From Mantamonas sphyraenae STR306 (Eukaryota > Protista > CRuMs): a stretch of DNA of 64,000 nucleotides. The notes under the pieces are model-generated. The model was not told the DNA's origin. It ran no database searches and was given only the letters and a program-made list of their open reading frames with translations. The position numbers were made by a program, and so were the translations under genes. Shown one piece after another: positions 7,001 through 53,803 of this stretch (positions are counted from its first letter, which is position 1; the number at the start of each line of letters is the position of its first letter). The stretch lies in assembly GCA_026936335.1 (NCBI GenBank), contig JAPMXV010000021.1:124001-188000 (forward strand). Direction: 5' to 3'.

Positions 7001-10000
7001 CTGAAAGCAGAAGCCAAGAAGAAGGCTGAGGCAGAGGCACAACGCAAGGCAGAAGCTGAAGCAGAAGCCAAGAAGAAGGCTGAGGCTGAGGCAGAAGCAC
7101 AGCGCAAGGCAGAGGCAGAAGCAGAGGCAAAGCGCAAGGCTGAGGCAGAGGCACAACGCAAGGCTGAGGCTGAGGCAGAAGCCAAGAAGAAGGCTGAGGC
7201 TGAGGCAGAAGCACAGCGCAAGGCAGAGGCAGAAGCAGAGGCAAAGCGCAAGGCTGAGGCAGAGGCAAAGCGCAAGGCTGAGGCAGAGGCACAACGCAAG
7301 GCTGAGGCTGAGGCAGAAGCCAAGAAGAAGGCTGATGCAGAGGCTGAGGCACAACGCAAGGCAGAGGCAGAAGCACAGCGCGAGGCAGAAGCTGAGGCAG
7401 AAGCGAAGAAGAAGGCTGAGGCAGAGGCTGAGGCAAAGAAGAAGGCTGAGGCAGAGGCCGAGGCACAACGCAAGGCTGAAGCTGAAGCAGAAGCCAAGAA
7501 GAAGGCTGAGGCAGAGGCACAACGCAAGGCAGAAGCTGAAGCAGAAGCCAAGAAGAAGGCTGAGGCTGAGGCAGAAGCACAGCGCAAGGCAGAGGCAGAA
7601 GCAGAGGCAAAGCGCAAGGCTGAGGCAGAGGCACAACGCAAGGCTGAGGCTGAGGCAGAAGCCAAGAAGAAGGCTGAGGCTGAGGCAGAAGCACAGCGCA
7701 AGGCAGAGGCAGAAGCAGAGGCAAAGCGCAAGGCTGAGGCAGAGGCAAAGCGCAAGGCTGAGGCAGAGGCACAACGCAAGGCTGAGGCTGAGGCAGAAGC
7801 CAAGAAGAAGGCTGATGCAGAGGCTGAGGCACAACGCAAGGCAGAGGCAGAAGCACAGCGCGAGGCAGAAGCTGAGGCAGAAGCGAAGAAGAAGGCTGAG
7901 GCAGAGGCTGAGGCAAAGAAGATGGCTGAGGCAGAGGCCGAGGCACAACGCAAGGCTGAAGCTGAAGCAGAAGCCAAGAAGAAGGCTGAGGCAGAGGCAC
8001 AACGCAAGGCAGAAGCTGAAGCAGAAGCCAAGAAGAAGGCTGAGGCTGAGGCAGAAGCACAGCGCAAGGCAGAGGCAGAAGCAGAGGCAAAGCGCAAGGC
8101 TGAGGCAGAGGCACAACGCAAGGCTGAGGCTGAGGCAGAAGCCAAGAAGAAGGCTGAGGCTGAGGCAGAAGCACAGCGCAAGGCAGAGGCAGAAGCAGAG
8201 GCAAAGCGCAAGGCTGAGGCAGAGGCAAAGCGCAAGGCTGAGGCAGAGGCACAACGCAAGGCTGAGGCTGAGGCAGAAGCCAAGAAGAAGGCTGAGGCTG
8301 AGGCAGAGGCACAACGCAAGGCACAAGCTGAGGCAGAAGCCAAGGCTGAGGCTGAGGCAGAAGCCAAGAAGAAGGCTGAGGCAGAGGCTGAGGCAAAGAA
8401 GAAGGCTGAGGCTGAGGCAGAAGCACAACGCAAGGCCGAGGCAGAAGCACAACGCAAGGCTGAGGCTGAAGCAGAAGCCAAGAAGAAGGCTGAGGCTGAG
8501 GCTGAGGCACAGCGCAAGGCAGAAGCTGAGGCACAGCGCAAGGCAGAAGCTGAGGCAGAAGCGAGGAAGAAGGCTGAGGCAGAGGCTGAGGCACAGCGCA
8601 AGGCTGAAGCTGAGGCAGAGGCACAACGCAAGGCAGAGGCAGACGCAGAGGCAGAAGCTCAACGCCTGGCAGAAGAGCAAGCACAGCTGGAGAACCTCCC
8701 CTTTGAGGAAACGTCTGCTCTGGAGCATGCTCCGACAGCACCAGAGCCAACCATGTCCCACAATGATTCCTTCACCTTTGACGTCGACTCCTTGGCCGGC
8801 ACTCTGTCCACTCTGGACACCCTCAACGAAGATGACAACAACGTGGATGACGATTCCTTCAACATCGACTCCCTGTCATCCGTCCTCTCCACCCTCTCTG
8901 CCCCCATGGACGATCACACCGCTGCCACACACATCCAACGCCTCATCAAGGGCAAGCTGGCACGCAAGCGCTTTGCAAAGATCCTCAAGTGGCGCAAGGT
9001 GCGCCGCAAGACCGAACGCGAGATCCTCACATCTGAACGCACGTTTGTACGACAGTTGGACGCCATCATCAATGTGTATCTGATCCCATTGCGCCAATGG
9101 GCGGATTCAGAGACACCCATCCTCACACACGACGAGATCGACACGCTGTTCTCCACTGTCCTGGAACGCATCTACGAGATCAATGCTCCGTTCCAGAAGC
9201 AACTCTACAACCGTGTGTGGAACCTCGATGGAGAGACACGTCCCATCATCTCTGACCTGTTCCTGGACATGATGGAGCAGTTTACCGAGTATGCCGAGTA
9301 CGTTGTCAATTACGACGCAGCCATGGGTCTGTGGACACACCTGTGTCAGAAGGGTGTCAACCGTGAGTTTGTCCTCTTTTGCAACCAGGCCATCCAAGAC
9401 TCGCGTTGCCAGGGACAGAATCTGCAATCACTTCTGATCACCCTCGTCCAACGCATGCCACGCTACCAGCTGCTCCTGCAAGAGATGCTCAAGCACACAT
9501 GGCCACAGCATCCCGACTACGAAGGTTTACAGCAAGCCGTGGAGGACATGATCAAGGTCAACACGTTCATCAACGAGGAGAAGCGAGCTGCGGAGCAGGT
9601 CAGCGACAAGCTGAGTGAACTGGAAGAGGCCATCCACCACCGAGGGGACCTGGCCATCCAAAAGGAAGGACGGATGCTGGTGAAAGAGGGCAATGTGAGT
9701 GAAGCAGGCAAGGCAAACAAGAAGGGGAAGCGAGGCAAGGCCCAATCACGGTACGCCTTTCTCTTCAACGACATGCTGCTGATCAGCACAGCCAGCAGTG
9801 GGTTCACACGCAAGAGCACCAGCACCTACAAGATGAACGCTTACGTGAAGCTGTGTGGTGCGCAAACTGCACTCGATGCCCCGTCTGGCATTGTAGCTGT
9901 GCGCAACGGCGACGAAGAGATCGAGCTGTTCTTTGCCGAAGGGCAGACGGAAGCGATGAACGAGTGGTACGAGACTGTGTGCGAACAAGTGCACGCTCTG

Positions 10001-10225
10001 TCACAGGTCCAGTACCTGAGTGTGGTGAGCGACCGGCCTCGCTCGAGCACGTTGACGCCGCTGCCCGAGTTTTCCCGCTCGCGCTCCCCTTCTCCCAACG
10101 CACACTCCAAGACACCGAGTCCACGTGATCAAACCTCATCCTCCACGTCATCGTCGTCCACAAACACCACCAACGACGACGCCCTGGATCTGGATGCCCT
10201 TGGAGACGCCCTGGCCGGATTGTAG
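3923..10225 (+). CDS. WW + charged Ala/Glu/Lys repeat + IQ + DH-PH Rho guanine nucleotide exchange factor
   Basis: WW: PLPEGWRKITKGDTVFFYHRQTRTKQFERP (~5872-5962). IQ: AATHIQRLIKGKLARKRF. DH: EILTSERTFVRQL...VQRMPRYQLLLQEMLKHT...INEEKR. PH: SRYAFLFNDMLLIS...EWYETV. Compensating frameshifts at ~6170 and ~7004 within the repeat. Confidence 0.88.
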   Translation: MTDMFAQPTMGSGPSTATLLGFSNRWTGMSASAKAAAETEEETEATQDGQSESDDADEVGSVEEAVMDDAGTEYWDTVNRLVAAQKERREEQASRIPTLVFSDYESEQAARAVHAQFSTAGTGEEEWRAAVEAERDRKAHMYEDAVSNAMLSMSARLDESVLGEDEEEGRQVQLLETTMSPSKWKPLSPKRAQSGAEVSVERAEDAHVDALEELLNTSAELVLQEGMGGRGMGTGMLSSYEEVTVAMVAQQLGAGRADDDAESRRGKVRAGRDEVAEALTSSEYEPLGNMAPARPVEPVETEEERRARVLRSPRFLRRSLFGVVDMDNVRALEETELEEPADLPPVAMDTARDGTGDGEVEMSEEERALQAKIRALEAEQDEFVRAQEEAVAELVRRREDRQIEWREFEEKQAARRKAEEEERAARQLQLMLETRARERELKEKYEREVAARAEAAEKRAEERRLAKLAEESSGDEIDPEREAEKQRLLGIEGEIPVVVVEDVSEEEEEEEEEEGCMEEEEEDTDDRQVQHEVAIGQDAVDANTRMTVLWMAVRLAKINAPPMHSKPVRLHLSHGRTVEPPKPEKLTLDVELRARLRSYSETGHVRGNVDNVEKVGRGETQEKTVVLEHVDDSDKDTEATEMTAKEADDAPLPEGWRKITKGDTVFFYHRQTRTKQFERPTAPVVVERDPEEAFQWKRADEKAEAEAQRKAEAEAQRKAEAEAEAKKKAEAEAEAKKKAEAEAEAQRKAEQKQRPRLRQKHNARLRQKQSARLRQRHNARLRQRLRQRRRLRQRLRQRRWLRLRQKHNARQRQKQRPRLRQKHNARQKLKQSARLRQRHNARLRLRQKPRRRLRQRLRHNARLKLKQKPRRRLRQRHNARQKLRQKRRRRLRQRLRQRRRLRQRPRHNARLKLKQKPRRRLRQRHNARQKLKQKPRRRLRLRQKHSARQRQKQRQSARLRQRHNARLRLRQKPRRRLMQRLRHNARQRQKHSARQKLRQKRRRRLRQRLRQRRRLRQRPRHNARLKLKAEAKKKAEAEAQRKAEAEAEAKKKAEAEAEAQRKAEAEAEAKRKAEAEAQRKAEAEAEAKKKAEAEAEAQRKAEAEAEAKRKAEAEAKRKAEAEAQRKAEAEAEAKKKADAEAEAQRKAEAEAQREAEAEAEAKKKAEAEAEAKKKAEAEAEAQRKAEAEAEAKKKAEAEAQRKAEAEAEAKKKAEAEAEAQRKAEAEAEAKRKAEAEAQRKAEAEAEAKKKAEAEAEAQRKAEAEAEAKRKAEAEAKRKAEAEAQRKAEAEAEAKKKADAEAEAQRKAEAEAQREAEAEAEAKKKAEAEAEAKKMAEAEAEAQRKAEAEAEAKKKAEAEAQRKAEAEAEAKKKAEAEAEAQRKAEAEAEAKRKAEAEAQRKAEAEAEAKKKAEAEAEAQRKAEAEAEAKRKAEAEAKRKAEAEAQRKAEAEAEAKKKAEAEAEAQRKAQAEAEAKAEAEAEAKKKAEAEAEAKKKAEAEAEAQRKAEAEAQRKAEAEAEAKKKAEAEAEAQRKAEAEAQRKAEAEAEARKKAEAEAEAQRKAEAEAEAQRKAEADAEAEAQRLAEEQAQLENLPFEETSALEHAPTAPEPTMSHNDSFTFDVDSLAGTLSTLDTLNEDDNNVDDDSFNIDSLSSVLSTLSAPMDDHTAATHIQRLIKGKLARKRFAKILKWRKVRRKTEREILTSERTFVRQLDAIINVYLIPLRQWADSETPILTHDEIDTLFSTVLERIYEINAPFQKQLYNRVWNLDGETRPIISDLFLDMMEQFTEYAEYVVNYDAAMGLWTHLCQKGVNREFVLFCNQAIQDSRCQGQNLQSLLITLVQRMPRYQLLLQEMLKHTWPQHPDYEGLQQAVEDMIKVNTFINEEKRAAEQVSDKLSELEEAIHHRGDLAIQKEGRMLVKEGNVSEAGKANKKGKRGKAQSRYAFLFNDMLLISTASSGFTRKSTSTYKMNAYVKLCGAQTALDAPSGIVAVRNGDEEIELFFAEGQTEAMNEWYETVCEQVHALSQVQYLSVVSDRPRSSTLTPLPEFSRSRSPSPNAHSKTPSPRDQTSSSTSSSSTNTTNDDALDLDALGDALAGL
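6025..8665 (+). repeat. Coding tandem repeat (AEAEAQRK / AEAEAEAKKK units) with a 480-bp higher-order period
   Basis: 24- and 30-nt units; the lines starting at 7021, 7501 and 7981 are identical, giving a 480-bp periodicity. Confidence 0.95.
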
Positions 10226-10292: not shown

Positions 10293-12931
10293 TCACCATT
10301 TGGAGACAACACCGAGCAGGTCGGTGTTTGCCTGCAGGAGCTCGTCTGCTGAAGCAAACTTGGCGGCAATGTCCTTGGAGACGATGTTTGCCTGGACGAG
10401 ATCGTCGACAATGTTGTACATCTGCAGCCAGAGCTCATAGCCCGCCTGCAGGTCGGCCTGAATGTCAGCGCAGCCTACAAAGGTCTGCTTGGCCGTGTCG
10501 AGGTCCATGCCGTCGAGAAGCATGGTCTTGACAATGACGCCGAGACCGCAGTCGACGTCTTGGTTGTACGGCAAGCTGGAGTGCAGCTTGGCGTAGGAGC
10601 GAGGTGGAATCACAGCCTTCTTGCGCACCACCATGCTTGCACACAACATCTCCATCAGGTTGCGAAGGTTGCCCGTGAGCATCTTGACCATGGCATTGAA
10701 TCCAAGGAGGTCGTGGTCGATGGGGCCCTGCCAGATGCCCGAACGTGCTGCTGGGAGGACGGAAAAGACGCGTGCGACCAAGGTTGCACTCAGATACTCG
10801 GTGGCACTGGGGTCACGCACATCCCACTCGGTCACATACTCTGCAGCAGGGCTCAGCGGCTTGTCGTGCAGCGCTCCCAGGCGCAGCATCTCGGTGAGCA
10901 GCAACGTCTCTGCAAAATAGTCACTGGCGCCAAACAGGCTCATGCCCAGCGGGGTCGGCTCGGCCCCGTCCAGGTAGGCCAGCTCTTGGAGGGTCTGCAG
11001 GATGACGGACAGTTGCATCTCGTCCATGGTTACCACCACGTCGCTGTCAATTTTGGCACCAGCCACGCTGCTGCTGCTGCTACTGCTGCTGCTGCTGCTG
11101 CTCTCTCCCTGCTGGTCCAGCTGGTAGGAGAGAGCAAAGCGAAAGTCGATGCTCTTGAGGGTCTTGGGCTTGAGGGTCTTGCGGTTGTCGCTGTTTGATG
11201 ATGAGGAGGAGGAGTTGCCAGCCGAGGATGAGGAGGAGGAGGAGGACGAAGACGACTTCATGGCACGGTACTGACGGCCATACTCACGTGTGATATCGAG
11301 CTGGGGCACACGCGGCTGCTGATGCTTGGAATTGGGGCCCGGATACTTTGTGCTTGCGACAAGGAAGGGCGGTTGGTTGCCTGTGTAATGGGCACGGAAG
11401 CGGACGCCGTGGGTAAAGGCAAAGGAGTTTGGGTTGCCCAAGGCACACACGAGGATGCTGAGGGACTTTGTGCGCAGATCGTGGAGGGCCTCGCTACAGG
11501 CACGCAACTCAATGGTGTCCACACGGGGCATCTTTGCGGTCCAGACGCCCGTGGAGACGGCGTTGAGCACCTGAGTGCCCACGGCACACTGGGAGATGAG
11601 GAAGTAGAGGGAGTTGGGAAGGGCCGGGCCGACGAGGGCGTGGAGGTCGCTGGGGGCGATTTCCGCGTGGAGCGGAGCACACTTGCAGTGGAAGTCAAAG
11701 ATGGGATGGCAACGGACGACAAAACGGGCGCGCACAAACATGTTTTGGTAGTACACTTGTGCCAGGTTGCGTGTGACGGTGACGCCAGCGGAAAACTGCT
11801 TGACCTTGTCCACCACCCAGGGGAAGCTCTCCTGGGGATTGAGTGGGTCGCAATGGTAAATGCCAGCCAGGATGCACATGTCCACAAAGGCCTCCTGGGT
11901 CACCTGCAGGTTCTGTAGGATGGTCAGAGTGTCCACGTAGCTGTACGTGCCCTCTGCAAAGTCAATGCTCAGGATCAGGCGGCTCACACCAAACATCAGC
12001 ATGTCCAACGGCCCCAACACGGCTTTGATGAACGCTCGCGGCTGATTGAGCCACGCCAGCTGTGCTTCTGCCTGGTACGGAGCCTGCATGAAATCCACCC
12101 CGGCATTCTTGAACAGGGTCATGAGGTGCGAGGCATACTCAAACGAGGTGGCGTATTCTGCACATGGGAACACACGTGTACACACGCTGGTCAGCACACA
12201 TGTGCGTGTGGGAACAGGGCCCGCCGCGGGAGAGGGGAAAATCTTGGGCAAAAAGTTACCGCCGCTGAAGCTGCTGCTGGCGCTCTCTGTGTCGCCCTTG
12301 TAGTACGAGGTCCATGCCTGGGACCGGTCGCGCTGACGCTTCTGCCATGGTTGGGTAGGATGCCGGGGAAAGGAGGTGGTTAGAGACATGCATTTGGGAT
12401 GGGAGGGAGGATACTTTGCAAGGGGGAAATGTGATCTCGGCAAGGCGAGGGAAAACGGGTGGCAAGGGAGGCGGTGCTAGGGCTGCGTACCTTGAACGAG
12501 TTGTTGGATTCTTGGAAACCGGGCTTGGGGAGAGTGTTGATTCCCGGAAAGACAAAGACGGGATTGATGTTGTGAGATTGGAACAGGGCAAGGCGTTCGT
12601 TGACGCGCTCGGTGAGGGAATGGGGCACGCCACCGAGGGCAGGTTGCCATGGTTCGGTGACACTGAGGGAGCGCACAAAGTGGTTGACATCAACGCCAAT
12701 GCGGCCGTTGGCAAGGTCGGAGATGTTGCCCGTGAAGAGCAGTGGCTCGATAAACTCTGCGAGAGGGGTGAAAATTGACGAGTCAGGAATGTGGGCGAGG
12801 TGAGTGAAGAGGCCCCCGGAAGGCAGCAGTGGGGAGGAAAGGAAGGAAGGAAGGAAGGAAGGAAGGAGGAACAAGGCCATGTACGTACTGCCGAGACCAC
12901 GGGGTCCAGAACGCAAGACCAGAGAGGACAT
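10293..12931 (-). CDS. MKT1: Mkt1-like post-transcriptional regulator (XPG/PIN-family), spliced
   Basis: Spliced N-terminus RGLGKFIEP...GRIGVDVNHF...NINPVFVFPG; APYQAEAQLAWL; DMCILAG; C-terminal GPIDHDLLGFNAMVKMLTGNLRNLMEM and LPYNQDVDCGLGVIVK resemble the MKT1_C region. GT-AG introns at ~12159-12259, ~12343-12490 and ~12757-12887. Confidence 0.8.
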
Positions 12932-40446: not shown

Positions 40447-42702
40447 ATGTCCAGCAAGGATTTGCCGCCGGTGAAGTTCACCAGTACGTGATTTTTGCCC
40501 GCCCGTGTGTGCAAGTGTGTGATGAGGAGCTTCCCCTGCGCGTGCTTTTTGCTCCCTTTCGCTGCGCTTCGCTCAGCAGACACTCAGTCCGGCCCCAAAA
40601 GCCCTCTCGAACCGGCCCGTTGACGGACTGTTCCCCGCCACTGACTCGCATGCGCCGTCGCACCATCCACAGCCATCAGCAAGGGAGACGGTGTGCAGGT
40701 GTGGCGTGGCCCACCCAGCGACATCGAAAAGGAGGAAGGCTACCAAAAGTGCGTTTTTGCAGCGGTTCTATCGGGCTGCGTTTGGCGTTTGGCGGAATGC
40801 AAAGACCCACCCAAGGACAAACCACGGCCGCTGACACCTCTGTGCCCATCCCCACACAGCACCGACGGGTCTGCAGTACATTTCAGCCGTGACGGCACTC
40901 GGCTAGCCATCACCACAAGCACAGGGGTCTCTGTGACCGACACGGCGTCGGGCGAGGTGGTGGCGGAGATCGAACGCACCAAGATTTTCGCAGTGCAGTT
41001 TTCGCCTCTGGCCACGTACTTGCTCACGTGGGAGCGCTGGAACAAGGACAAGCACACAGAATCCGGCGAGGGCAACCTGAGGGTGTATTACACAGCCACG
41101 GGGGAGCTGATCACGCAGTACAAGCACAAGTCGAACAACCGCGACGCCTGGCCCTTTGTGCAGTGGTCCGATGACGAGCTCATTGCCGCTCGCATGGTCC
41201 AAAACGAGGTGCTGTTCTTTGACGGCACCAACGTGGCCTCCGAGGCCATTGACACCCTGGAATTCGAGGGCATTGGTGCGTTTGCCCTGAGCCGAGGCGA
41301 TCCCCCGTACAAGCTGGCCGCCTTTGTGCCCGAACGCAAGGGCAGCCCGGCCGCCGTCTGTGTGTATCATTATCCCAACATCGGACGCAGCCAGGCGGTG
41401 GCTTCCAAGAGCTTTTTCAAGGCTGGCAGCGTGTCGATGGAGTGGAACAAGGCGGGCACCGCGCTGATCATCAAGACCAGCACCGACCACGACCAGACGG
41501 GAAAGAGTTACTACGGCGAGACAAGCCTGTACTACATGAGTGCCAATGGAGACGTGTCGTGCAAGGTGCCGCTGCCGAAGGAGGGACCGGTGCACGATGT
41601 CGGGTGGAATCCGAACGGCAAGGAGTTTGTGGTGGTGCATGGATTCACGCCGGCCAAGGCCATCCTGTTTGACTACAAGTGCCGTCCCAAGTTTGACTTT
41701 GGGTCGGCGTCGCGCAACACGGTCGTGTGGAGTCCGCATGGACGGTTCCTGGTCATTGCGGGCTTTGGCAACCTGGCCGGCGACATGGACTTTTGGGACC
41801 GGCAGAAGGAGGAGCTGATGGGCACGGCGAGGGCGTCGGATGCACACTCGTTCCACTGGTCGCCCGACAGCAGGCACTGCATCACCGCCACCACGTTCCC
41901 GCGGCTGCGAGTGGACAACGGCTTCCAGATCTGGAAGCACAACGGCGACCTGGTGCACGAGGAGTCGTTTGACGAGCTGTACAGCGTGCAATTCCGCCCC
42001 TGTGCGCCGGGCATCTATCCCAACCTGAAGCCCGAGGCGAAGCAGCAGCAGAGCAACGGCGGAGGCGGAGGCGCCTCCAGCGGCAGCTCCGCCTCGAGCA
42101 AGAGTGCCAATGCACAGCCCAGCGCACAGCCATACCGTCCGCCGGGCGCACGCGGCTCCAACTGGTCGTCGAGCTTCATGAAGCGCAAGGAGGACAATGA
42201 TGCGCCAAAGAAAATCACAGGCAGCGTGGCCAAGAGCAACAGCGCAGGAGGAGGCGGAGGCAACGGCAGCCGCACAAACACCATTCCCGGCGCTGCACCC
42301 GTGGGTGGGGAAAAGTTGTCGCGCACGGCATTGAAGAACAAACGCAAGCGGGAACGCAAGAAGGCCCTGCGGGAGGCTCAAAAGGCACGCGAGGACCTGC
42401 AAGAGACGATCAAGAGCAAGGGAGGCGCAGGGTCGTCCTCATCCTCCTCATCCTCCTCAACCGGATCAGGTTCGGGCAAGGAGGACGACGTGGACGAGGT
42501 GGAACTGCTGGACTCGGTCGACGCCTGTGCAAAGCGTCTGAAGAATCTGCACAAGAAAATGCGGCAGATTGCGGCCCTGAAGCAGCGCATGGATGAGGGA
42601 GAGGTGCTTGAGGACGACCAGCTGTCCAAGGTGCAACGTGAGACGGAAGTCACCTCGCTTATCGATCGCATCGAAGCCAAGAAGGCGCAACTGGAGGGTT
42701 GA
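40447..42702 (+). CDS. EIF2A: Eukaryotic translation initiation factor 2A (spliced 5' end)
   Basis: KSFFKA...WNKAGT...DQTGKSYYGET; EGPVHDVGWNP; IAGFGNLAGDMDFWD; TTFPRLRVDNG; PYRPPGARG. Two 5' introns (gtacgt, gtgcgt donors). Confidence 0.95.
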
Positions 42703-42726: not shown

Positions 42727-45700
42727 TTGGATGATGATGGAGGGGGGGGGGGGAATGTGATGGCAGCAAGCACAGAATGTGCAAGTGGCAAAAACAATGA
42801 AGCCACAAGTTGTTTTCGTTTGAGTGACTCTTTTGTCTTGACCGGCGTGCGTGCCCTCACCCAACACAGAATGGTTGCCACCACACGCAGTCGTCGGCAG
42901 ATCCATGGGAAGTACACAGCCGAACTGAGTCCCACGGAGTATGAGGCGGCCGTTCTGTACGAGAGGTACAGGCACAGCGATCGCGTGGGATCGCCCCAAG
43001 TGCATCCGGATGCCTGGGCCTTCTTGTGCCACTTCACCAGCCACCGTCACCGCAGCCGAGTGGCCATTGCCTCTGAAGTCCATGCCCGTGTGGTGCTCAA
43101 GATCCTGAGGTACAGGCTAAGGGAGCCACGAAAACTGGACGACAACGAACAGCTGCCGCTTGCACAGGCCCTCTTTGCACTCGTTGCTGGCGTAGGTGTC
43201 CTTGACGTGAAGACCAAGGCCTTGTACATGTTTAAACAGCACTCAACCGTGATTCCAACAAAACCAATAGTTATGGAGGCGTCCTACTCAGCTCCAGACG
43301 TGCAAGACAACAAGGAGGGGCCTGCGTTTGACCTGAAAAAGCTCGTGGAAAATGCAGCGAGTAGTGGCAGACTGTGTCACGACGCATGCAAATGGTGTCG
43401 ACAGAGCACAGGAAACACATCAGAGAACACACCAGAATTCGTCACAAACTACGTGCACACAGAGTATGCCCTGACCCAGGTCAGCATCGTGCTGTTGAGG
43501 CAACTGGAGAAGAAATTTGCCAACGACTTCAGTGTCCGCCCCGTGTTCCCCGTGCCTGGCAGCTTCAGCTCCGTAGCATTCAATGTTACGCGTCGCAAGG
43601 ATCTTATCTCGCGCCCTGTACTCCGCATGGACAACACCCTGTCCGAGAGGGAGCAGCGTGACGGACGTGGCGGGCACGCGCGGCATCCGCTCGTGTCTCT
43701 GGACACGTCGGCAACGGAGGTGCGTGCCTCTGTAATGTATGTGCTGCACATCGAGGACCTTGTCATGTCCTGCATGGCGCGTGTGCACACGACAGCAGAG
43801 TCAGCATCGTCGAGCTCATCGCTCCTCCAGCGTGCTGTGGAAGACGTGATGGCTGACGTACGTGACAAGGCGCGGCGTTGGAACCTGCGTGATGGGGATG
43901 TGACTGTGTTCCTGCGTGGTGAAACGCACACAACCATGTCCACGCTGGTCAACCAAACCAACCGCAGAGCGATCATCTTCGAGGCCACGCTCGCGCACAA
44001 GCACAACGAGACCATGGAGCAGCTGCTGGATACCCTGAGTGCAGCGAGCGAACGCATGGGTTTCAACGTGGAATGCTGCGCGAACCCCGTGTCAACCTGT
44101 TTGTCCAGGGCCTGCGCGCAAACAACGATCATCCAGAGTCCCCTCAGCGACGGATCTCTGATTCGAGAAGGCGTCTGGATCCAAGGCGAATCGGAACACA
44201 CTATCACACGTGACAACCACATCCACAGGCTTGTGGTGGGGTTGTTGTGTGGTTGCTCAACACTTCCCATCACCCTTTCCACCGTAGGCAAGACGGGCAA
44301 GATGTTGGACTGTGTAAGGACGTGGCACTTGCGGGGCGAGCTCGTGGACGCGGAAAAGGCGGTGCGTCTTGCGGCAAGGTCGGATTCACGGGCAGCGGAA
44401 AAGCGGCAGCTGAACGATGAGGTCAACCTGGCGATTGCAGCTCTGGTGGACGACGCGACACTGGAAGAGCTGAACGCCATGATGCGTACACCAGTAGTGG
44501 GCGCTTCTGTGGGAGCGAGCGACAACGACGATCACCACGACAATCGCGAGGAGTCTCAGACACTCTTCGATGCATGCGGTTTGATGCCCAAACGAGGGAG
44601 TGGTGTTGTGGCCGAGGCAATTTCGGTGGCGGGCGAAGGTTCAAGCGTTGGCGAGGCCATCAGCGCCATCGAGGAAGCTCTTCAGCAAGAGTGCAAGGAA
44701 AGAAAGCCACTGCCACCGGGGAGAACAAGCGTGTTTGTTCGGCGACGTGAGGTACACGGGCAGCGATTGCGGCTATTCGTGGCACGGGACTCCCTCGAGT
44801 CAGCGTCAATTCTGCGGGCCATGGGCACCCAGCACGTGCGAGATGCAATGACGGAAGCAGGCTTGGATGACTACGCCACGGCTGTGGACAAGATGGTGCA
44901 GGCAGAGAAGGGTTTGGTGCAGGCGGCGCGAACGGAGGCAAGCACAACCGCGTATGTAAGCAAGAAGAAATGGGACGCGTTTGTGGACGCCGTGCGCAAG
45001 GAGAACAGTGGAATGCCTATGTCCAAGGCGAACAAGGTGGTGCCTGCGGCCACACTCCAGAAACTAAGGCGGGAGGCGCCGTCATCACTGAAATCTCTCA
45101 GGATTCCCAAAGACACTACGTGCCTGCGAGTGACGAACGACGCCAGTGGCAAGAAGAGCAACACTCGCCATGATCCGAGGCCTAGTTTTGGTCCCGACTG
45201 GCCAGCAACGCACCAAGAACTCCTGTGCAAACTGCTGATGTGGTTTTGTGAATCCACCGTGACGCACACCGACACTATCAGCAAAATGACGACACATTAT
45301 AGCCGCTCTCTTGGAGCAATTCACGAGACCAAGCCTGTTCCAATCCCCCCCAAGATCACTGCGGTGATAGACAAGTGGAACCATGCGGGGTACGAGGCGC
45401 AACGCACCCGAACGATGCTGGATTTGGAGGCCCTGGTTCCAAACCACAACATGGATGTCCAGGCGTGCGTGGACTTCCCCGGCATGGTTGAGGCGATGCT
45501 TCTCACTCCGCTGCCCGAAGACGTGTGCGGCCGAGTGCAGATCACGGAGGCGCAGGCGGAAGGAAGCACACATTGGGAGCGCATGGCCTTCGCGGGTGGA
45601 GCGAAGCGGTTTCAAGAAGACGCAAAGAGGATGCTGCCACACATTGTGTATGCGTTGAGGGAGTTTGCACGGATCTACTTCACAGCGGCAGGCCTCGCGT

Positions 45701-48204
45701 CCACTCGCCGCGAGTGTGATAGGTTGTTTCTGGAGGTGACCAAATTCGAGATCAAGTCAGCACGGCAACACCTGCGCCAAGAACACGGTGTGCAGCTGGG
45801 AGAGGAGGACGAGGATGAGGACGAGGACGAGGACGAGGACGAGGAGGAAGATGAGGAGGACGAGGGGCGGGAAGAGGAGGACGAGGAGGACGAGGACGAG
45901 GACGAGGACACACGGGCGAATCCGAGCGAGCAGAAGGACGAGGAGGCAAAGGCACGTGACCCTGTGGAAGAATTCCTCGAGCTCACTGCCCCTGAACTGC
46001 GTGCGGTCTACCGCCGGCGCAGACCAAGCGATAGACCCGAGCGACCCCAGGTGGAGGATTTGGGTCTGGACGAACGCCAGCCATCACGCGCATCCCTCCA
46101 CAAGAGGCTGTTGCTGTTCAGCCTGGTGCTGGCAGACGGCGTATTTGGCAAGCGCGGCATTCACGCCGACAACACCGACGCCATGTCGCATGCGGTGGCA
46201 GTGTGGCTGGTGAGGGCAGTGGGTGGGTCGAAGCGCGCGTTCGTTCCCACCCCAAAACGCCTGTCCACCCCGCAGACGATCATGACCTCCCAAGGTGGTC
46301 TAGATATTGCTTTGCTGCCGCTGCTTCATGGAAACGACCGGAAACCTTCCACCGAGGCGCCGGAAAACGCTGCACTGTGGGACATGAAGCGCCAGCTCAT
46401 GGACGACGCGGGCAAACTACCACGGGAGGTACGGCTTGTCCACGCCGCGTCACAGGTGGTGGGTTACCAGCTAGGCTTGCGGTTGGAGGAGCACGTGAAG
46501 AATGCTGTGGTCGAGATCAAGGAGACTGCACTGGCGTCAGCCACGCAGGAGGGGGAAATGGCCGAGGTGGACGAGCTGGAAAGTGCGCTATCGGCGCTGA
46601 AAACGCGCCCTGCTGCAGAGCCAAATGACACACTGGTGTACCACGATGTTATCAGGGACGTCTTTCTGGCCCAAGAGGCAAGGAAGAAGAAGACAAAGAT
46701 GAAGTCGGGAATGCGCGGGCCAAATCCGTTTCTCGCGGTTCAGAGAGCAAACGACGTCATTTTCAAGGGAGGTGAAGCCCGGATCCACCGGTTCAAGCCT
46801 AAACCGTGGGGATATCAGCAGCTGTTCACCCTTCCAGAGACAACACGAGGAGGACGGCGAGTTGGATTTCCGTGCCAAGAATCTGACGAACCCGTGCCAG
46901 CTGTTGGCGTGTTCAATTCCATGGTTCAGTGGGCAGGGGGTGGATCGGGATCAACGTTGGCCTCGCCCAAGCCCCCGGCCACCATCAGTGCACACCGGCT
47001 GTCCAACTTGGGCTGGAATCTATGGCGAAATTTTGGGCACAACTGGATGCCCAAGTTGCAAGCATCGCTGACAACCCATGCTGGAGACAACATGGCTGCG
47101 ACCATCGACCGTGTTGTGGGCCTCATCAAGCACTATGCCCCTCCTTCGTCAGAGGAGCTCTCGGTGGCTTTGAAGGCCCTGGAATTGAATGTCGAAGATG
47201 AGCTGGTTCGCAAATGGGAGGACGTGGCGCGTGCAGCTGGCACAGCAACAGGCAAACGCCTCGCGCTGTCCACATCCTGGCTGCCGCGAACTGAAGAGGC
47301 AGGGGCGTCGTCTGAATCATCATCATCGTCGTCATCGTCGTCGTCTTCTTCGTCGTCCGACACGTCAATGACACGGTGGGCATCGAGTGTTCATGGTCTG
47401 TGTGCAGGCTACGACCCAGGTGTGTACCAGCACGTTGGAGCCCTGGTTTACTACTATGAGCGTGTTTGTGTTTCTCGTTTCGCAGACGTGTGCTGCATTG
47501 AGTACGGTCTGGCGTTTGACCTCAAGGGCACCAATGTCCGCTACGAGCAGAGGCGATCGGGCCATGCAGAGATCTCCAACAAGCTCAGCAAGCTGGGCAA
47601 GCAGCTTGCCAACGCTGTGGACGCGGCAAAGAATTCGAAGATCGAGGAGGAGATGAAAGCATTGACCGAAAAGTTGAGGCCAATCCAACAGCATATGGCC
47701 AAGCTGATCAAACACGGAAGCGCGGCAGTGATGGCTGACCTCCAACGACAGTGCAACCACCGAATTCACGTCGGATATGGAGCGGCGCCCGTGGTTGCAA
47801 GTGTGCCAGTGCGCACTGATGCCGCCCAACTCGCCTGCGTCGCTACGGTGACGATGACTCACGAAGCACAGACATCCAAACACTCTGCGTACGACTGTAA
47901 AGCCGTTCGAAAGCATGCTTGGAGTGTCGACAAGAACGGGTCACGGAACGATCGGTGGTATGTGCACGAAGTGGCCACCAAGACGCTGCCGGATGGAGAG
48001 GAGTGGGTGGCGCACAAGGATCGCAGTGCTGCCATCAACATGGCCAACAAATGCCATGCAGCTCGGTGTGGTGGTGTCGAGCTGTGGCTTTTCACATGGG
48101 TGTGGAGCGGCAAACGTGCGCATCTACAAGAGGCGGCCCGCCAGGCCATGCATGGTGGACAAGATGCAGGAAATGGGGGACAAAATGTCCAAGTGGAGTT
48201 GTAG
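42727..48204 (+). CDS. Very large Fanzor/TnpB-like RNA-guided nuclease (RuvC at C-terminus); probable start ATG 42871 (1777 aa)
   Basis: RuvC-I GYDPG (D codon 47413); helical region ...LIKHGSAAV; IHVGYG; relocated Glu THEAQTSK (E codon 47863); RuvC-III HKDRSAAINM (D codon 48019). Intronless. Confidence 0.78.
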   Translation: MDDDGGGGGNVMAASTECASGKNNEATSCFRLSDSFVLTGVRALTQHRMVATTRSRRQIHGKYTAELSPTEYEAAVLYERYRHSDRVGSPQVHPDAWAFLCHFTSHRHRSRVAIASEVHARVVLKILRYRLREPRKLDDNEQLPLAQALFALVAGVGVLDVKTKALYMFKQHSTVIPTKPIVMEASYSAPDVQDNKEGPAFDLKKLVENAASSGRLCHDACKWCRQSTGNTSENTPEFVTNYVHTEYALTQVSIVLLRQLEKKFANDFSVRPVFPVPGSFSSVAFNVTRRKDLISRPVLRMDNTLSEREQRDGRGGHARHPLVSLDTSATEVRASVMYVLHIEDLVMSCMARVHTTAESASSSSSLLQRAVEDVMADVRDKARRWNLRDGDVTVFLRGETHTTMSTLVNQTNRRAIIFEATLAHKHNETMEQLLDTLSAASERMGFNVECCANPVSTCLSRACAQTTIIQSPLSDGSLIREGVWIQGESEHTITRDNHIHRLVVGLLCGCSTLPITLSTVGKTGKMLDCVRTWHLRGELVDAEKAVRLAARSDSRAAEKRQLNDEVNLAIAALVDDATLEELNAMMRTPVVGASVGASDNDDHHDNREESQTLFDACGLMPKRGSGVVAEAISVAGEGSSVGEAISAIEEALQQECKERKPLPPGRTSVFVRRREVHGQRLRLFVARDSLESASILRAMGTQHVRDAMTEAGLDDYATAVDKMVQAEKGLVQAARTEASTTAYVSKKKWDAFVDAVRKENSGMPMSKANKVVPAATLQKLRREAPSSLKSLRIPKDTTCLRVTNDASGKKSNTRHDPRPSFGPDWPATHQELLCKLLMWFCESTVTHTDTISKMTTHYSRSLGAIHETKPVPIPPKITAVIDKWNHAGYEAQRTRTMLDLEALVPNHNMDVQACVDFPGMVEAMLLTPLPEDVCGRVQITEAQAEGSTHWERMAFAGGAKRFQEDAKRMLPHIVYALREFARIYFTAAGLASTRRECDRLFLEVTKFEIKSARQHLRQEHGVQLGEEDEDEDEDEDEDEEEDEEDEGREEEDEEDEDEDEDTRANPSEQKDEEAKARDPVEEFLELTAPELRAVYRRRRPSDRPERPQVEDLGLDERQPSRASLHKRLLLFSLVLADGVFGKRGIHADNTDAMSHAVAVWLVRAVGGSKRAFVPTPKRLSTPQTIMTSQGGLDIALLPLLHGNDRKPSTEAPENAALWDMKRQLMDDAGKLPREVRLVHAASQVVGYQLGLRLEEHVKNAVVEIKETALASATQEGEMAEVDELESALSALKTRPAAEPNDTLVYHDVIRDVFLAQEARKKKTKMKSGMRGPNPFLAVQRANDVIFKGGEARIHRFKPKPWGYQQLFTLPETTRGGRRVGFPCQESDEPVPAVGVFNSMVQWAGGGSGSTLASPKPPATISAHRLSNLGWNLWRNFGHNWMPKLQASLTTHAGDNMAATIDRVVGLIKHYAPPSSEELSVALKALELNVEDELVRKWEDVARAAGTATGKRLALSTSWLPRTEEAGASSESSSSSSSSSSSSSSDTSMTRWASSVHGLCAGYDPGVYQHVGALVYYYERVCVSRFADVCCIEYGLAFDLKGTNVRYEQRRSGHAEISNKLSKLGKQLANAVDAAKNSKIEEEMKALTEKLRPIQQHMAKLIKHGSAAVMADLQRQCNHRIHVGYGAAPVVASVPVRTDAAQLACVATVTMTHEAQTSKHSAYDCKAVRKHAWSVDKNGSRNDRWYVHEVATKTLPDGEEWVAHKDRSAAINMANKCHAARCGGVELWLFTWVWSGKRAHLQEAARQAMHGGQDAGNGGQNVQVEL
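42790..42809 (+). repeat. Left copy of 20-bp direct repeat (contains AATGAA)
   Basis: Exact match to 48268-48287; both copies are preceded by GC, with an A5 versus A6 difference. Confidence 0.9.
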
Positions 48205-48290
48205 ATGATTGTTGTGGTGAAATGCTTGTTTAAACTAGCGCTTGTAAGCAGCGCGAGGTGATTTGCAAAAAACAATGAAGCCACAAGACC
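48205..48290 (+). ncRNA. Candidate omegaRNA (scaffold + guide) downstream of the Fanzor-like ORF
   Basis: Position immediately 3' of the ORF, as known for TnpB/Fanzor; stem CTaGCGCT-TGTAAGC-AGCGCgAG (~48235-48257); GTTTAAAC palindrome. No expression evidence. Confidence 0.35.
48268..48287 (+). repeat. Right copy of 20-bp direct repeat (contains AATGAA)
   Basis: Exact match to 42790-42809. Confidence 0.9.
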
Positions 48291-48362: not shown

Positions 48363-48985
48363 CTATTCCTGTGACGATTGTGTCTGTTTGGTGCGTTTGT
48401 ACACAAGGTTGCGCTCGTGGACGACGGTCTTGATGCGGGCCATGCTCTTGCGCACCTTTTGCATTCGCTGCGGATTGTCCATGCGCAGGCCCTTCTTCTT
48501 CATGTCGCGCTTCTCGGTGAGGAGCAGATTGCGCTCCCTCAGCAGCACCAGCCACAATGACTGCAGGTCCTGGAAGCTCTTGAGGCGCAGTTCGCTGGCA
48601 CGCCAGGCTCGGCCTGAGGCGGTGGGGAGCAGACAAGCGGGGACGAGATGCGGGTGGCGGGACGTCCGGGGCGTCAGCGTTCACACACACACACACACGA
48701 CAACCACACATGTGACGGCAAAGCCATGGTAAAGAAAGGGAGAGAGTGTATGGGGCAGAGCGACTCACCTGCGTGCACAGATTCGTTCTCCTTGCGTTCG
48801 AGGTAGGACGGGGCGAGGAGCTGGGACTCGAAAGAGTCGCGTGGAGCGGCCGAAGTGTCGTCGGCGTCCAGGACGGCGACACTGGAGGTGGAGAAGGAGG
48901 CCGACGCATGCGGATATGTACAGGCGACCATGCTGCGGTGCACAATGTGTGCCTTGACACGCACGGAACGGAGGCCAGAAAACAT
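48363..48985 (-). CDS. MRPL47: Mitochondrial ribosomal protein uL29m, 2 exons
   Basis: Splicing 48614-48768 gives [36 protein letters not shown]...KVRKSMARIKTVVHER; N-terminal targeting-like sequence. Confidence 0.9.
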
Positions 48986-49026: not shown

Positions 49027-49770
49027 ATGAGCAGCAGCGGAGGCAACACGACGCAGGATGCGATGAGGAGTTCGCTGTTCAATCCCGACACGAGTTCGTT
49101 GTGGTCACAAGCCCGGGAGGGCAACCTGGACGGAGTGATGGCAATTCTGGACGAAAAGCCAAAGCGGATCAACGCCAAAGATCCGGAATCGGAACGCACG
49201 GCGCTGCACTGGGCGTGTGCAAAGAACAGGGTGGAAGTGGCGCAGTATCTGCTGGACCAAGGAGCCAAGGTGAACACTTTTGACGAACTGGGATGGACAC
49301 CGCTGATCAGTGCGTGCAGCGCAGGGCACACGGCGGTGGTGGAGCTTCTGCTGAGTCAGGAAAAGCTCAAGGTGGACGCAGCGACGACCGCAGGCAAGAC
49401 GGCCCTCATGTATGCGGCCAGTAGCAAACACGGGGACATTGTGCAGATGCTGCTGGCTGCAGGGGCCAATGTGACCGCAAGCAACTCGCTGGGCGAGACG
49501 GCTCTGCACCAGGTGTGTGCACAGGGGGCACAGAGTGTGGCAGTGATGCTTCTGGAAGCGGGCGCATCGCTGACAGTGAAGAATGAGGACGGTGACACTC
49601 CGCTGGCGTTGGCAGTGGTGGAGGACGACGTGAGTCTTGTCCGCCGGTTGTTGCACGACATGGGCAAGGATGACGCCGAGGCGGTGTTGAGTGGAGAGAA
49701 CAAACACGGTCAGAGTGTGTTGAGCATGGCCAAGAGCGATGGGATGAAGTTGGCGTTGGGAAGTGTGTGA
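49027..49770 (+). CDS. Ankyrin repeat protein, gankyrin/PSMD10-like
   Basis: RTALHWAC...DELGWTPLISACSAGH...GKTALMYAAS...GETALH...GDTPL. Confidence 0.8.
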   Translation: MSSSGGNTTQDAMRSSLFNPDTSSLWSQAREGNLDGVMAILDEKPKRINAKDPESERTALHWACAKNRVEVAQYLLDQGAKVNTFDELGWTPLISACSAGHTAVVELLLSQEKLKVDAATTAGKTALMYAASSKHGDIVQMLLAAGANVTASNSLGETALHQVCAQGAQSVAVMLLEAGASLTVKNEDGDTPLALAVVEDDVSLVRRLLHDMGKDDAEAVLSGENKHGQSVLSMAKSDGMKLALGSV

Positions 49771-49829
49771 CATGTGGGGAATGGAGGCCGCGCCCTGTTC
49801 GAAACAACCCCTTCTGCTTCTTGATTCGG

Positions 49830-52800
49830 ATGATCAAGTGTGGCAATTGGTTCTCGTCGTCCAACAATGACATTCCGGACGACGAGTCGGAACGGGAGTT
49901 GCTGTTCCTGGAGAGCAGCGTGCGAGGAGACCACGCAACGCTCCTGAAGCTGCTCAAACGCGGTGTGGATCCAAACACGCCGCGGAGCAAGAATGGGCGC
50001 TTTGCACTGCATTGGGCAGCCAACCACGGTTCACTTCAGTGTGTGCAATTGCTCATCCAGCACGGCTCTGCGGACGACGCCGTCGACCGCGTCGGCCGCT
50101 CGCCTTTGTACTGGGGTGAGTTGGGAGTGGTGATGGGAATGGGTGCGGGAGGAAGGCACGAGTGCGAGGACGGATGGATGTGTGTGGGAAGGGAGGGGGC
50201 GGTGGTAAACGTGACTGGGATGGATACGCACCTGAGGAGTGGGTTGATCGGAAATCGAAGCGCAAACTCGCTCACACGCACCTCGCACACACGGGGAAAC
50301 AGCATGCCGTGGAGGCCAATTTGCAGTGGTACAATACTTGGTGAGCATCGGAGCAGACGTCAACGCAGCCGATGAGACAAACAGCACGCCGCTGTTTGCA
50401 GCCGCGCGGTAAGAAAAAGAGTGGCGTCGTGCACACAAAAAGCCGAGCGCTGCTTTTGACTCGAATTCGCTTTGCAATCCAATCTGACACGATCGAGGGC
50501 GGGTGACGTGTGCACAGCAATGGCCACCTGGAATGCATGCAGCATCTCCTGGAACATGGGGCGCAGGTGAACATCAAAGGCACCACACAGGGCTGGACGG
50601 CGCTGCACTGGTGTGCGGTGAACGGGCGCGACGAATGTTTGCAGTTGCTGCTGGATTGCGGCGGCGACCCAAACCAGAAGGACGACGACGGGCGCACTGT
50701 GGTGCATTACGCCGCCCAAAACGGCCACGCGTCCACTCTGGAGATCCTGATGGACTACGGAGCCGAGTTGATGTTGGGGGATGCAAAGAACATCACCCCC
50801 CTGCACCTGGCCGCCTCCAACGGGCGTTCCCGAGCCGTGGATCTGCTTTTGTGTCAGCGTAAGTGTGGTCACGCGCGCGAGTTGTGCGTTGTGTGTGTGT
50901 GTGGAGGTGGGAAGGCGGTGGGTTGTTGTTGACACGCTGATTGTCCGCCCCACAACACAGAACCAGACGTGCTTGTTCGCAGCGACGATGGGGCGACGCC
51001 AATTCTGAATGCAGTGTTGGGCAACTTTAAGGAGGTTGTTCTGCTGCTGATTGACGCCCGTCCTGTGGACCAGCTGCAGCTGCTGGTGGACATTCTTGCG
51101 GGACGTGACGCCATGACGCTGGACCCGAAGCAGCAGGAACAATTGCGTACGATTGTGTCGTATGTGGCCACCATTCCCACGTACCAGGAGAAGCTGTTGA
51201 ACCTGATGTGCACTGGCGTGGCAGAGCTGGGGGCAGCTATCCTGAGCAGCACGGACGAGATCTACGCACAACGAGCGCACTTGGGCACGTGGCATGCACA
51301 ACTCATGGAGAAGCAGGCCAAGATGTTGGATGGCCAGAGTGACGAGGATGAACAGGCACAGCCGAGGGTTCCTCCTACCGCTGCAGCCGGACCCAGCGCT
51401 GCGGTGGCAGAGGTGGTGGAGGTGCAGGCGGACGAAGAGGTGGAGGTAAACGAAGAGGACGAAGAAGATGAAGAGGACGAAGAGGATGAAGAGGATGAAG
51501 AGGCAGAGGAGGCAGTATCCTTGATGGAAAAGACGACCCGGGACGCAGAGACGCTGCTGATCATGGTGCTGGCTATTGTGCGCATCGCGGCGGATGTGGT
51601 CAGCGATGAAAGCGACGTGAAGGATGTGAGCATGCAGGCACGCATGCGCGCAGCTGCACAGTTTTTGATCGAGTTGACGCCGTTGTGGGAGCACCTGGAC
51701 ACGCATCTGCAAGGGATCGACGAGAAACTGAGCGAGACGGTGGAACAGGTGAACGAACACGCAGCACAGGTGCATCGTGCGGAGCGAGAGGCGATGGAAT
51801 CGGGTCAGGCCAAGCTGGATGCGCTGTTTGGGGAAACGGACAGCAGCAGCAGCAGCGGTACAGTGTCCGGGAGCACAGGTGTGTCGCAGGGGCATGGAGA
51901 GGCAGTGCAGTCGCCTGTGAGTGTGGAAAGCACACAGTTTCTGCAAGCCTTGGCCACCGTGGTGGGTCCACTCGTGGACGCGCACTTTGTGGTGTCCAAC
52001 GCCCTCGAGCACTTTTCGCATCGTCACAACCAGCACTTGGACCTGGATGCCCTGCGCAAGTTTTCGCCCTCACTGGTGGCGCTGTCACGTCAGCCGTCGT
52101 TGGGTGCAGATGTGGACGAGGAGCAAGAGCAAGAGCAGGAGCAAGAGGAGCAGGCGAGCACGGTGGTTGTGGGTGCGGACAGCGAGAGCGAAGCCGACTC
52201 GCCGAGTGGAATGGCCATGGACGAAGACGACGTGGTTGCAGTCCACGAGACGACGACGATGACGACGGCACACGGTGGCATTGTGAGCAACGAGGAGGCC
52301 CAGTCTCCACGGGACGTGCAATCCATCTTGGCGGTGCCCGAACACAGCAGCTCGAATCTTCTTGCGCCGTCACACGAAACGCTGGAACAGGAGCGGGCGG
52401 AGAGCGAACGCATGCGTGCGGCACTGGAGCAACGACGGGCACAGTCGAACAAGGGCAAGGCAAGAGCGGCGACAACGGGCGAGTCGTCGTCACGAGAGTA
52501 TATCTGCGCGTCGTGCCCCGTTCACGACTTTCTGACACAGGTGGAACGTCATTTGGCACTGTTCAAAGCGATGGCCAACGTGGACGTGACGCTGCTGGTG
52601 GGTCACCTGCAGTTTGTGGCATTCTTCCCGTCGCTGATGGAAGAGTTTACAGAACTGCTGCACAGGGTGCCGTTTCATCTCAAACAGCAATGGTTCCGCG
52701 ACCAGTTGTACAAAGAGAAGGCGGAGCAGAGCTTTGAAACGATTGCGTTTACCGTGGAACGCGACGAGGTGCTGTCCAACTCGTGTGCCATGCTGTACCT

Positions 52801-53803
52801 CAAGACGGCCAATGCCCTCAAGGGGGAAATCAACGTGCGTTTCCACGGCGAGGAGGGCGTGGGAGCAGGCGTGCGTCGCGAGTGGCTGCGCATCCTGTCG
52901 GCAGAGCTGTTTAATCCGGATTACTCGCTGTTTGAGGGCAACGTCACACAGCCCAACCCGCTGAGCAACGTAAACCCGGACCATCTGTCGTACTTTCGGT
53001 TCTGTGGCCGCATTGTTGCGCTGGCAATCTACCACGGCGAGTTTCTGGGCGTGCACTTTACGCGGTCGTTCTACAAACACATTCTGGGCATGCCCATCGA
53101 CTACCACGACCTGGAAGACATCGATCCGGGCTACTGCCGCAACCTGGGCTGGCTGTTGGACAACGACATCGATGAGTTTGACCTGGGCCTGAATTTCACC
53201 ATTGTGCTGGACGTGTTTGGCCAGCAGCGCACCGTGGAGCTGAAGCCCGGCGGCGAGGACATCCCTGTGACAAACGCAAACAAAGCAGAGTACGTGCATC
53301 TGGTGTCAGAAATCCGGATGACAGACATCATCCACGACCAGATCGAGGCGTTTCTGGAGGGCTTCCGCGAGTTGGTGCCCCTGTCGCTGGTGCGCATCTT
53401 TACACGCGAGGAGCTGGAGCTCCTGATCAGTGGCATGCCCGAAATCGACGTCGACGATTGGTACCACAACACAGAGTACAACAACGGATTCAGCCAGGAG
53501 TCACCGCAGGTGCAGTGGTTCTGGACGTTTGTGCGAGAGATGTCGCAGGACGAGCGGTCCATGCTGCTTCAGTTTGTCAGTGGGACGACAGTGGTGCCTG
53601 TGGGTGGGTTCAAAATGCTCAAGGGGTTGCATGGGTTGCAGAAGTTTGGCATCACACGGGTGCCCACAACACAGGATCAACTGCCGACCACGAGCACCTG
53701 CTTCAACCTGCTCAAGATGCCAGAGTATCAGAGCGAACAGAGCTTGAGGAAGCAGCTGTGGACGGCGGTGCAGTGTGGGAACGTGGGCTTTGAGTTTGTT
53801 TAG
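49830..53803 (+). CDS. Ankyrin repeat + HECT E3 ubiquitin ligase (HACE1-like), spliced
   Basis: Ankyrin exons with introns at ~50116-50302, ~50409-50517 and ~50859-50960; HECT: FHGEEGVGAGVRREW...LLQFVSGT...LPTTSTCFNLLKMPEY (catalytic Cys). Confidence 0.88.

Follow-up and report, generated by a model that had tools for sequence, protein, structure and literature searches.

Fanzors are the eukaryotic cousins of CRISPR-Cas12, and the locus studied here raises the question of whether a very long reading frame between two host genes encodes such a nuclease and how it came to lie there. The initial annotation of the window (the whole stretch of DNA analysed, 64,000 nucleotides) from Mantamonas sphyraenae, a CRuMs protist (PMC10492846), had placed a giant Fanzor-like endonuclease of about 1,800 aa between housekeeping genes. 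Translation confirmed an open frame of 1,825 aa at 42727-48204 on the plus strand, and Pfam matches identified its neighbours as eIF2A on the left and MRP-L47 on the right, two convergent genes that flank the frame. A search of the genome assembly (25,061,354 bases in 78 contigs, ~59% GC) with the C-terminal part, as the annotation had proposed, revealed nine full-length paralogous copies on seven contigs with unrelated flanks, which led to the delineation of a mobile element with the following features in the window.

40693-42702, plus strand: host eIF2A gene, left neighbour outside the element (PF08662, E 9e-79)
42790-42809, plus strand: left-hand unit of a direct repeat of 20 bp, read as target duplication, its last 3 nt overlapping the left terminus, from a test of own against cross flanks
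42807-42830, plus strand: left terminus in the same CAG/CTG register as in the other copies, then a short palindrome; TIR-like match to the right end at 7/12 bases
42807-48275, plus strand: mobile element of 5,469 bp, bounded by sharp homology limits among copies
42871-48204, plus strand: coding sequence from M49 for the giant Fanzor-like protein of 1,777 aa, from alignment with other subfamilies
48205-48275, plus strand: conserved 3' non-coding end, candidate omegaRNA scaffold, with a 5-bp hairpin at 48238-48254 and one compensatory pair
48268-48287, plus strand: right copy of the 20-bp repeat, from repeat comparison
48363-48614, minus strand: last exon of host MRP-L47, convergent right neighbour outside the element (PF06984, E 8e-26)

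The giant ORF is the sole gene of the element. Its start had to be corrected, as the first 27 codons of the 1,825-aa frame, including a TTG and M12, represent host flank beyond the element; M49 (nt 42871) is the first ATG inside it and corresponds in the alignment to the initial Met of the other subfamilies, thus giving a protein of 1,777 aa. The full-length copies measure 5.5-6.2 kb and fall into four subfamilies, namely the window copy with L012 (97% DNA identity), L013-L016, L017/L019, and L018. Intact ORFs of 1,777-1,881 aa are present in six of the nine copies, while the remaining three are frameshifted, at least two of them in low-complexity tracts where assembly error is possible. dN/dS is below 1 in every region, with values of 0.17-0.5 between subfamilies that are lowest in RuvC, and of 0.18-0.52 overall between close copies, in which RuvC shows no amino-acid change. 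Between subfamilies, dS amounts to 0.47 in RuvC versus 2-3 elsewhere, and the RuvC region is identical in the window copy and L012, which suggests conversion of the 3' end. Apart from the full-length copies, we detected three fragments derived from the 3' end, one of them a solo right end of 62 nt, and an isolated fragment of the N-terminal domain (C54:169070-169351, E 9e-41). Relatives beyond this genome were found neither in a word search of 5.8 billion proteins with aa 1250-1825 and the N-terminal domain as queries nor in scans of viral and metagenome contigs, and a profile search of 1.84 billion representatives returned three matches, all of them poly-Ser artefacts. The giant Fanzor-like system is real, under selection and recently mobile, and it combines these properties with an unusual capture of domains, which are arranged as follows.

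42871-43725, plus strand: conserved N-terminal domain, aa 49-333 (33-47% between subfamilies; invariant His, Cys, Tyr and Arg)
43726-44472, plus strand: predicted FEN/5'-3' exonuclease-like fold, aa 334-582, with an H3TH-like motif and most catalytic carboxylates replaced (AlphaFold, structure search)
44473-45285, plus strand: conserved middle region, aa 583-853 (dN/dS 0.2-0.5)
45286-47364, plus strand: segment that probably forms the WED/REC part of the Fanzor core, interrupted by acidic and poly-Ser insertions (Atlas features of aa 1130-1825; putative start, placed by Fanzor1 motifs)
47365-48201, plus strand: RuvC-like domain with D1563 of the DPG motif, Gly in place of the canonical RuvC-II Glu, E1713 as the relocated Glu, a degenerate zinc finger, and D1765 (motifs, alignment)

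The C-terminal motifs lie where the annotation had put them, with D1563 in GYDPG, G1683/G1685 in IHVGYG replacing the canonical RuvC-II Glu, a relocated E1713-x-x-T-S, and D1765. The DPG of RuvC-I is invariant in every subfamily, and the D-E-D triad as a whole, described as intact, is shared without change by all subfamilies, although overall identity between them is only 34-46% (60-83% for RuvC), so that the motifs are not due to chance. The distance from Gly to Glu is ~30 residues here versus ~45 in PMC10530073. The zinc finger is indeed degenerate, C1724 alone remaining of four cysteines, and PF07282 (TnpB zinc finger) had no match at any copy of the element. In a blind MAFFT alignment with six PF07282-positive proteins of the same genome, the DPG, E1713, C1724 and D1765 of the window protein fell in the catalytic and zinc-finger columns. 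HHalign comparison with a further giant family of this genome (L034, see below) gave E 2.3e-4 around RuvC-III, including a common C-terminal Trp motif; with the HMM of that family and ~900 shuffles as controls, paralog L019 took first and the window protein third place, a weak signal. Atlas language-model features of aa 1130-1825 scored 0.94 against giant-virus DUF8286/PF07282 clusters, followed by Cas12b RuvC.

Measured against the Fanzor hallmarks given in PMC3627910, PMC10711439 and PMC10530073, the proposed signature stands as regards DPG, the Gly at RuvC-II, the moved Glu and the final Asp, and falls short in the C4 zinc finger, which is absent. The same loss qualifies the reading of the domain as a Fanzor-like RuvC, for which the blind alignment, HHalign, the Atlas features and the anatomy of the element all argue. 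Searches of Pfam, NCBIfam and PDB gave no direct TnpB/Fanzor sequence match, and the AlphaFold model of the RuvC domain, built from five sequences, was too low in confidence (pLDDT 35.6) to place the triad or to make fold searches informative; the assignment to TnpB/Fanzor thus rests on alignment. Both outcomes could speak for motifs that arose by coincidence in an unrelated transposon protein, an explanation that we find hardly credible in view of the way in which DPG, Gly, E-x-x-TS and D are ordered and spaced, the similarity to the PF07282-positive family, the Atlas features and the 3' end anatomy. Judged by sequence, the giant protein very probably descends from TnpB/Fanzor and would work like a Fanzor1, as a Fanzor-like protein rather than a strict member because the C4 zinc finger is absent. 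Matches to DARPins were rejected as summed repeat artefacts in which no single stretch was significant, and PDB matches (TnpB/Cas12f) of an alignment that includes TnpB-type rows were not counted, as they are circular.

With three of four zinc ligands lost and the RuvC-II region shortened, the protein could also have given up cutting and act as an RNA-guided DNA binder, in which the triad would be structural or metal-binding and the extra domains would recruit host factors; a Chlamydomonas Fanzor with similar junctions bound RNA and showed no cutting in vitro (PMC10530073). We regard a non-cutting protein as decidedly unlikely, since the three acids have not changed between subfamilies in which dS is saturated, RuvC is under the strongest constraint of all regions, and the junction scars described below point to cuts near the guide.

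As to the remainder of the protein, the proposed figure of >1,200 extra aa at the N-terminus is probably too high: the WED/REC core, going by Fanzor1 motifs, presumably starts near residue 850 and leaves an extension of ~800 aa. The accompanying statement that the protein is far longer than typical Fanzors holds, with 1,777 aa versus 600-700 aa for most Fanzor1 (PMC11423790). For aa 49-333 no homologs and for aa 583-853 no matches were found. The AlphaFold model of aa 334-582 (pLDDT 62.8, pTM 0.53), for which the alignment comprised the element's own paralogs only, was compared with 48,161 solved chains, and the best 7 were all 5'-nucleases (Z 5.4-6.4, most of the domain aligned). T5 exonuclease ranked first (Z 6.4, rmsd 4.3, 169 aligned), followed by a mycobacterial flap endonuclease, a plastid exonuclease and T4 RNase H (Z 6.3 each), Pol I (5.9), ExoIX (5.7) and XPG (5.4). 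Atlas likewise placed 5'-3' exonuclease and XPG clusters first (TM 0.54-0.55), as did the viral library. FEN1 sequence profiles did not detect the segment, and HHalign against FEN1 brought the expected segments into register, though at a non-significant E of 0.45. Identity to the structural matches is 6-12%. As the Z scores are modest (<8), the Foldseek E-values not significant, and Cas12/RuvC folds, which match the first 130 residues, score only slightly lower, we consider a FEN-type fold for aa 334-582 likely on the basis of the model.

As in the FEN1/XPG/T5/Pol I superfamily, the predicted fold spans a PIN-like core and an H3TH-like region, whereas in the giant protein the carboxylates are mostly replaced and the fold sits within a Fanzor-like nuclease. 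According to an inferred motif mapping of the seven catalytic carboxylates, H341, R397, S456/T457, S477 and S511 occupy expected acid positions, and D475 is kept in three of five paralogs. Invariant features comprise H341-x-E343-D344, an NRR motif and a Gly-x-Thr-x-Lys H3TH-like motif. The modelled domain is most likely a nuclease-dead binder of DNA structures. Literature searches found no natural fusion of a Fanzor or TnpB to a FEN-type fold, nor a description of a natural RNA-guided nuclease joined to a DNA-repair nuclease fold.

Analysis of the right end addressed the RNA component that such a nuclease would use. The distance from stop codon to right end is 72 nt in all subfamilies, and the five-pair hairpin is kept in 7/7 distinct ends with one C-G to U-A compensatory change, a single event. 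Its loop (48243-47) can pair with the terminal ATACA (48270-74) in 91% of cells, a possible pairing that lacks covariation and is weakened in the window copy. The folding energy of the whole right end was no better than that of shuffles, and an Rfam search gave no match. Directly after the conserved right end the flanks diverge copy by copy, the pattern that a scaffold with a guide specific to each copy should produce; positions 48276-48290 are the predicted guide of the window copy. None of four contig-level runs is recorded as RNA, but one of them, X4, appears transcriptome-like, as its pieces end shortly beyond the stop codon of eIF2A and shortly ahead of the 3' end of MRP-L47. These pieces carry L012-type rather than window-type letters, and some extend >300 nt beyond the right end; as contigs, which show neither RNA ends nor levels, they give no more than an indication that transcription of sibling copies continues through it.

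Comparison of the junctions revealed a duplication of 4-13 nt in eight of the nine copies, its start coinciding with the first bases of the right flank. The extent of duplication lies far above the cross-pair expectation (0/20,000 permutations were as high, even minus the two longest), and in two copies the match is limited to the first 4-6 nt of a 13-nt stretch. The duplication of the window copy reaches 20 bp because its target resembled the last nine bases of the element, within which this copy bears the target's letter. TA is found on both sides in two copies (L012 and L018). When the right end is reverse-complemented, 4-9/12 bases agree with the left terminus across copies. The solo right end (L021:6947-7009; C10:8446-8507) has an intact hairpin, an 8-bp duplication and a 3-nt microhomology, and could be a stand-alone guide locus or an aborted copy. 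Taken together, the duplications from the right flank, the solo right end and the young RuvC region fit copying from the right-hand side. An empty allele with read-through of the insertion site was not seen in the contig-level runs.

Such junctions raise the possibility that the giant protein alone opens new sites, into which the element is copied from its right end without a transposase, the zinc-finger-less Fanzor, the remodelled flap-nuclease fold (invariant H341-x-E343-D344) and the new domains jointly steering repair. Most junctions are not TA, the variable duplications and the 5'-truncated copy look target-primed, and all N-terminal domains are under purifying selection. The initial annotation had noted that no transposase gene lies inside the element, which we can confirm, as no DDE_3 match falls within any copy; nor was a transposase with the same ends found. 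A genome search for the IS607 resolvase and the Crypton tyrosine recombinase as partners came back negative while positive controls were detected, and LINE retroposition is unlikely, since the genome has a single RT match and poly(A) tails are missing. However, matches between the guide of one copy and the insertion site of another stay at background level and no right flank is common to two copies, leaving guide-directed spread to new sites unsupported, and the termini are CAG/CTG-like in a genome with abundant IS630/Tc1 transposases that could act in trans. We therefore consider self-mobilisation unlikely.

The genome contains 19 DDE_3 matches, none of them in the giant-element family; five of the 19, IS630/Tc1 DDE transposases, precede other giant TnpB-type frames by 6-7 kb in the same orientation (C2:227110, C11:277768, C57:110987, C44:318368 and C44:207327). 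Together with the CAG/CTG termini and the TA flanks of two copies, the DDE_3 matches suggest an IS630/Tc1 ancestry and help in trans. The 3' hairpin and 5' palindrome, the variable duplications and the 5' truncation would also suit a non-autonomous Helitron2-type element carrying a Fanzor, as in Chlamydomonas CRe-1/2/3 (PMC3627910), with a rolling-circle Rep supplied in trans, and in L017/L019 an asymmetric inverted repeat of 9 bp lies shortly before the hairpin (0.5% of internal controls). Since this repeat is absent from the remaining subfamilies and a Helitron Rep had no match in the genome, in a search whose positive control was likewise silent, we rate a Helitron2 origin as very improbable.

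The account we favour, and hold to be probable, is that of a non-autonomous IS630/Tc1-derived element whose giant Fanzor-like nuclease cuts empty sites, so that repair copies the element back; its descent from IS630/Tc1/mariner is probable as well. A transcript would run through the right end, its 3' part becoming the omegaRNA and the right flank serving as guide, and the resulting RNP would cut the element-free site inside the guide-matched stretch. Starting at the right flank, host repair would then copy through the element and restore it by what we infer to be restorative homing. If the left side were joined imprecisely, the variable duplications from guide position 1, the left-end microhomologies and the truncation of the solo right end at its 5' side would result. 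An IS630/Tc1 transposase acting in trans would most likely account for new sites, while the captured FEN-fold domain, probably nuclease-dead, may, as a speculation, bind flapped or branched DNA at the cut. Restorative homing was shown for bacterial TnpB and, for Fanzor, only cleavage (review PMC13565253). Fanzor1 cuts the non-target strand 14-17 nt from the TAM (PMC10432273), a distance larger than the 4-13 nt duplications, so that trimming must be assumed in the homing account. The lack of a TA duplication in seven of the nine copies also speaks against it, as do the short 4-6 nt matches of two copies and the failure to see an empty allele.

Among the closest known systems is Fanzor1 (SpuFz1, GtFz1, PpFz1; PMC3627910, PMC10432273, PMC11423790), which shares the DPG, the RuvC-II Gly, the relocated Glu followed by TS and the RuvC-III Asp, as well as the organisation as sole gene of a multi-copy eukaryotic element with a conserved 3' end beside a variable flank. 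In contrast to Fanzor1, the giant protein lacks the C4 zinc finger and carries the ~800-aa extension with its FEN-like fold, and the element has degenerate TIRs and non-uniform duplications. SpuFz1 has no end pseudoknot, and the possible one of the window element lacks covariation. Chlamydomonas CRe-1/2/3 are likewise Fanzor elements that lack a transposase, keep their 3' ends, occur in copies truncated at the 5' side and show duplications that vary in length (7-19 bp; PMC3627910), whereas the giant element has no TTTT target preference, introns or detected Helitron partner but does have CAG/CTG-like termini and a much larger protein. By analogy, the similar junctions may reflect a shared Fanzor-linked process. 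The element resembles the IS630/Tc1/mariner-associated Fanzors PGv-1 and PUl-4 and other giant families of this genome in its CAG/CTG-like termini, a possible weak TIR and the TA flanks of two copies, and differs from them in that no DDE gene lies inside it and seven of nine copies have no TA duplication. The protein triples the usual Fanzor size and suggests that the zinc finger is dispensable, while nine dated copies with readable junctions make the role of Fanzors for eukaryotic transposons a testable question.

The TnpB zinc-finger model gave 39 matches in the genome, ~30 of them in frames of 1,480-2,090 aa that belong to several families distinct from that of the window. By the evidence of these predicted proteins, giant Fanzor-like genes have undergone a genome-wide expansion, and the ~30 further frames would make this genome a natural library of domain captures by RNA-guided nucleases. 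One such family, L034-L038 (C44, C12, C70, C7, C51), has an intact C4 finger and DPG/IGDG motifs, and its right end shows CTG then TA in four of five copies, which is Tc1/mariner-like; the end of L037 is shortly tandem-repeated. Fanzor2-like proteins of conventional size with Pro at RuvC-II (L029-L032 on C44, C52, C58 and C6; frames of 633-849 aa) are present as well, though no IS607 resolvase was found in the genome. The sole RVT_1 match of the genome lies at C3:7371-7718 in a 963-aa frame, an RT of that type being seemingly near absent.

Elsewhere in the window, a host MKT1-like gene (10293-12443, minus strand; XPG_I, MKT1_N, MKT1_C), itself a member of the XPG/FEN superfamily, is located 30 kb from the element. 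Positions 49027-53803 on the plus strand hold ankyrin-repeat ORFs and then a HECT E3 ligase ORF, and 3923-10225 on the same strand a 2,100-aa ORF with a RhoGEF at its C-terminus and a repetitive, strongly purine-skewed middle.
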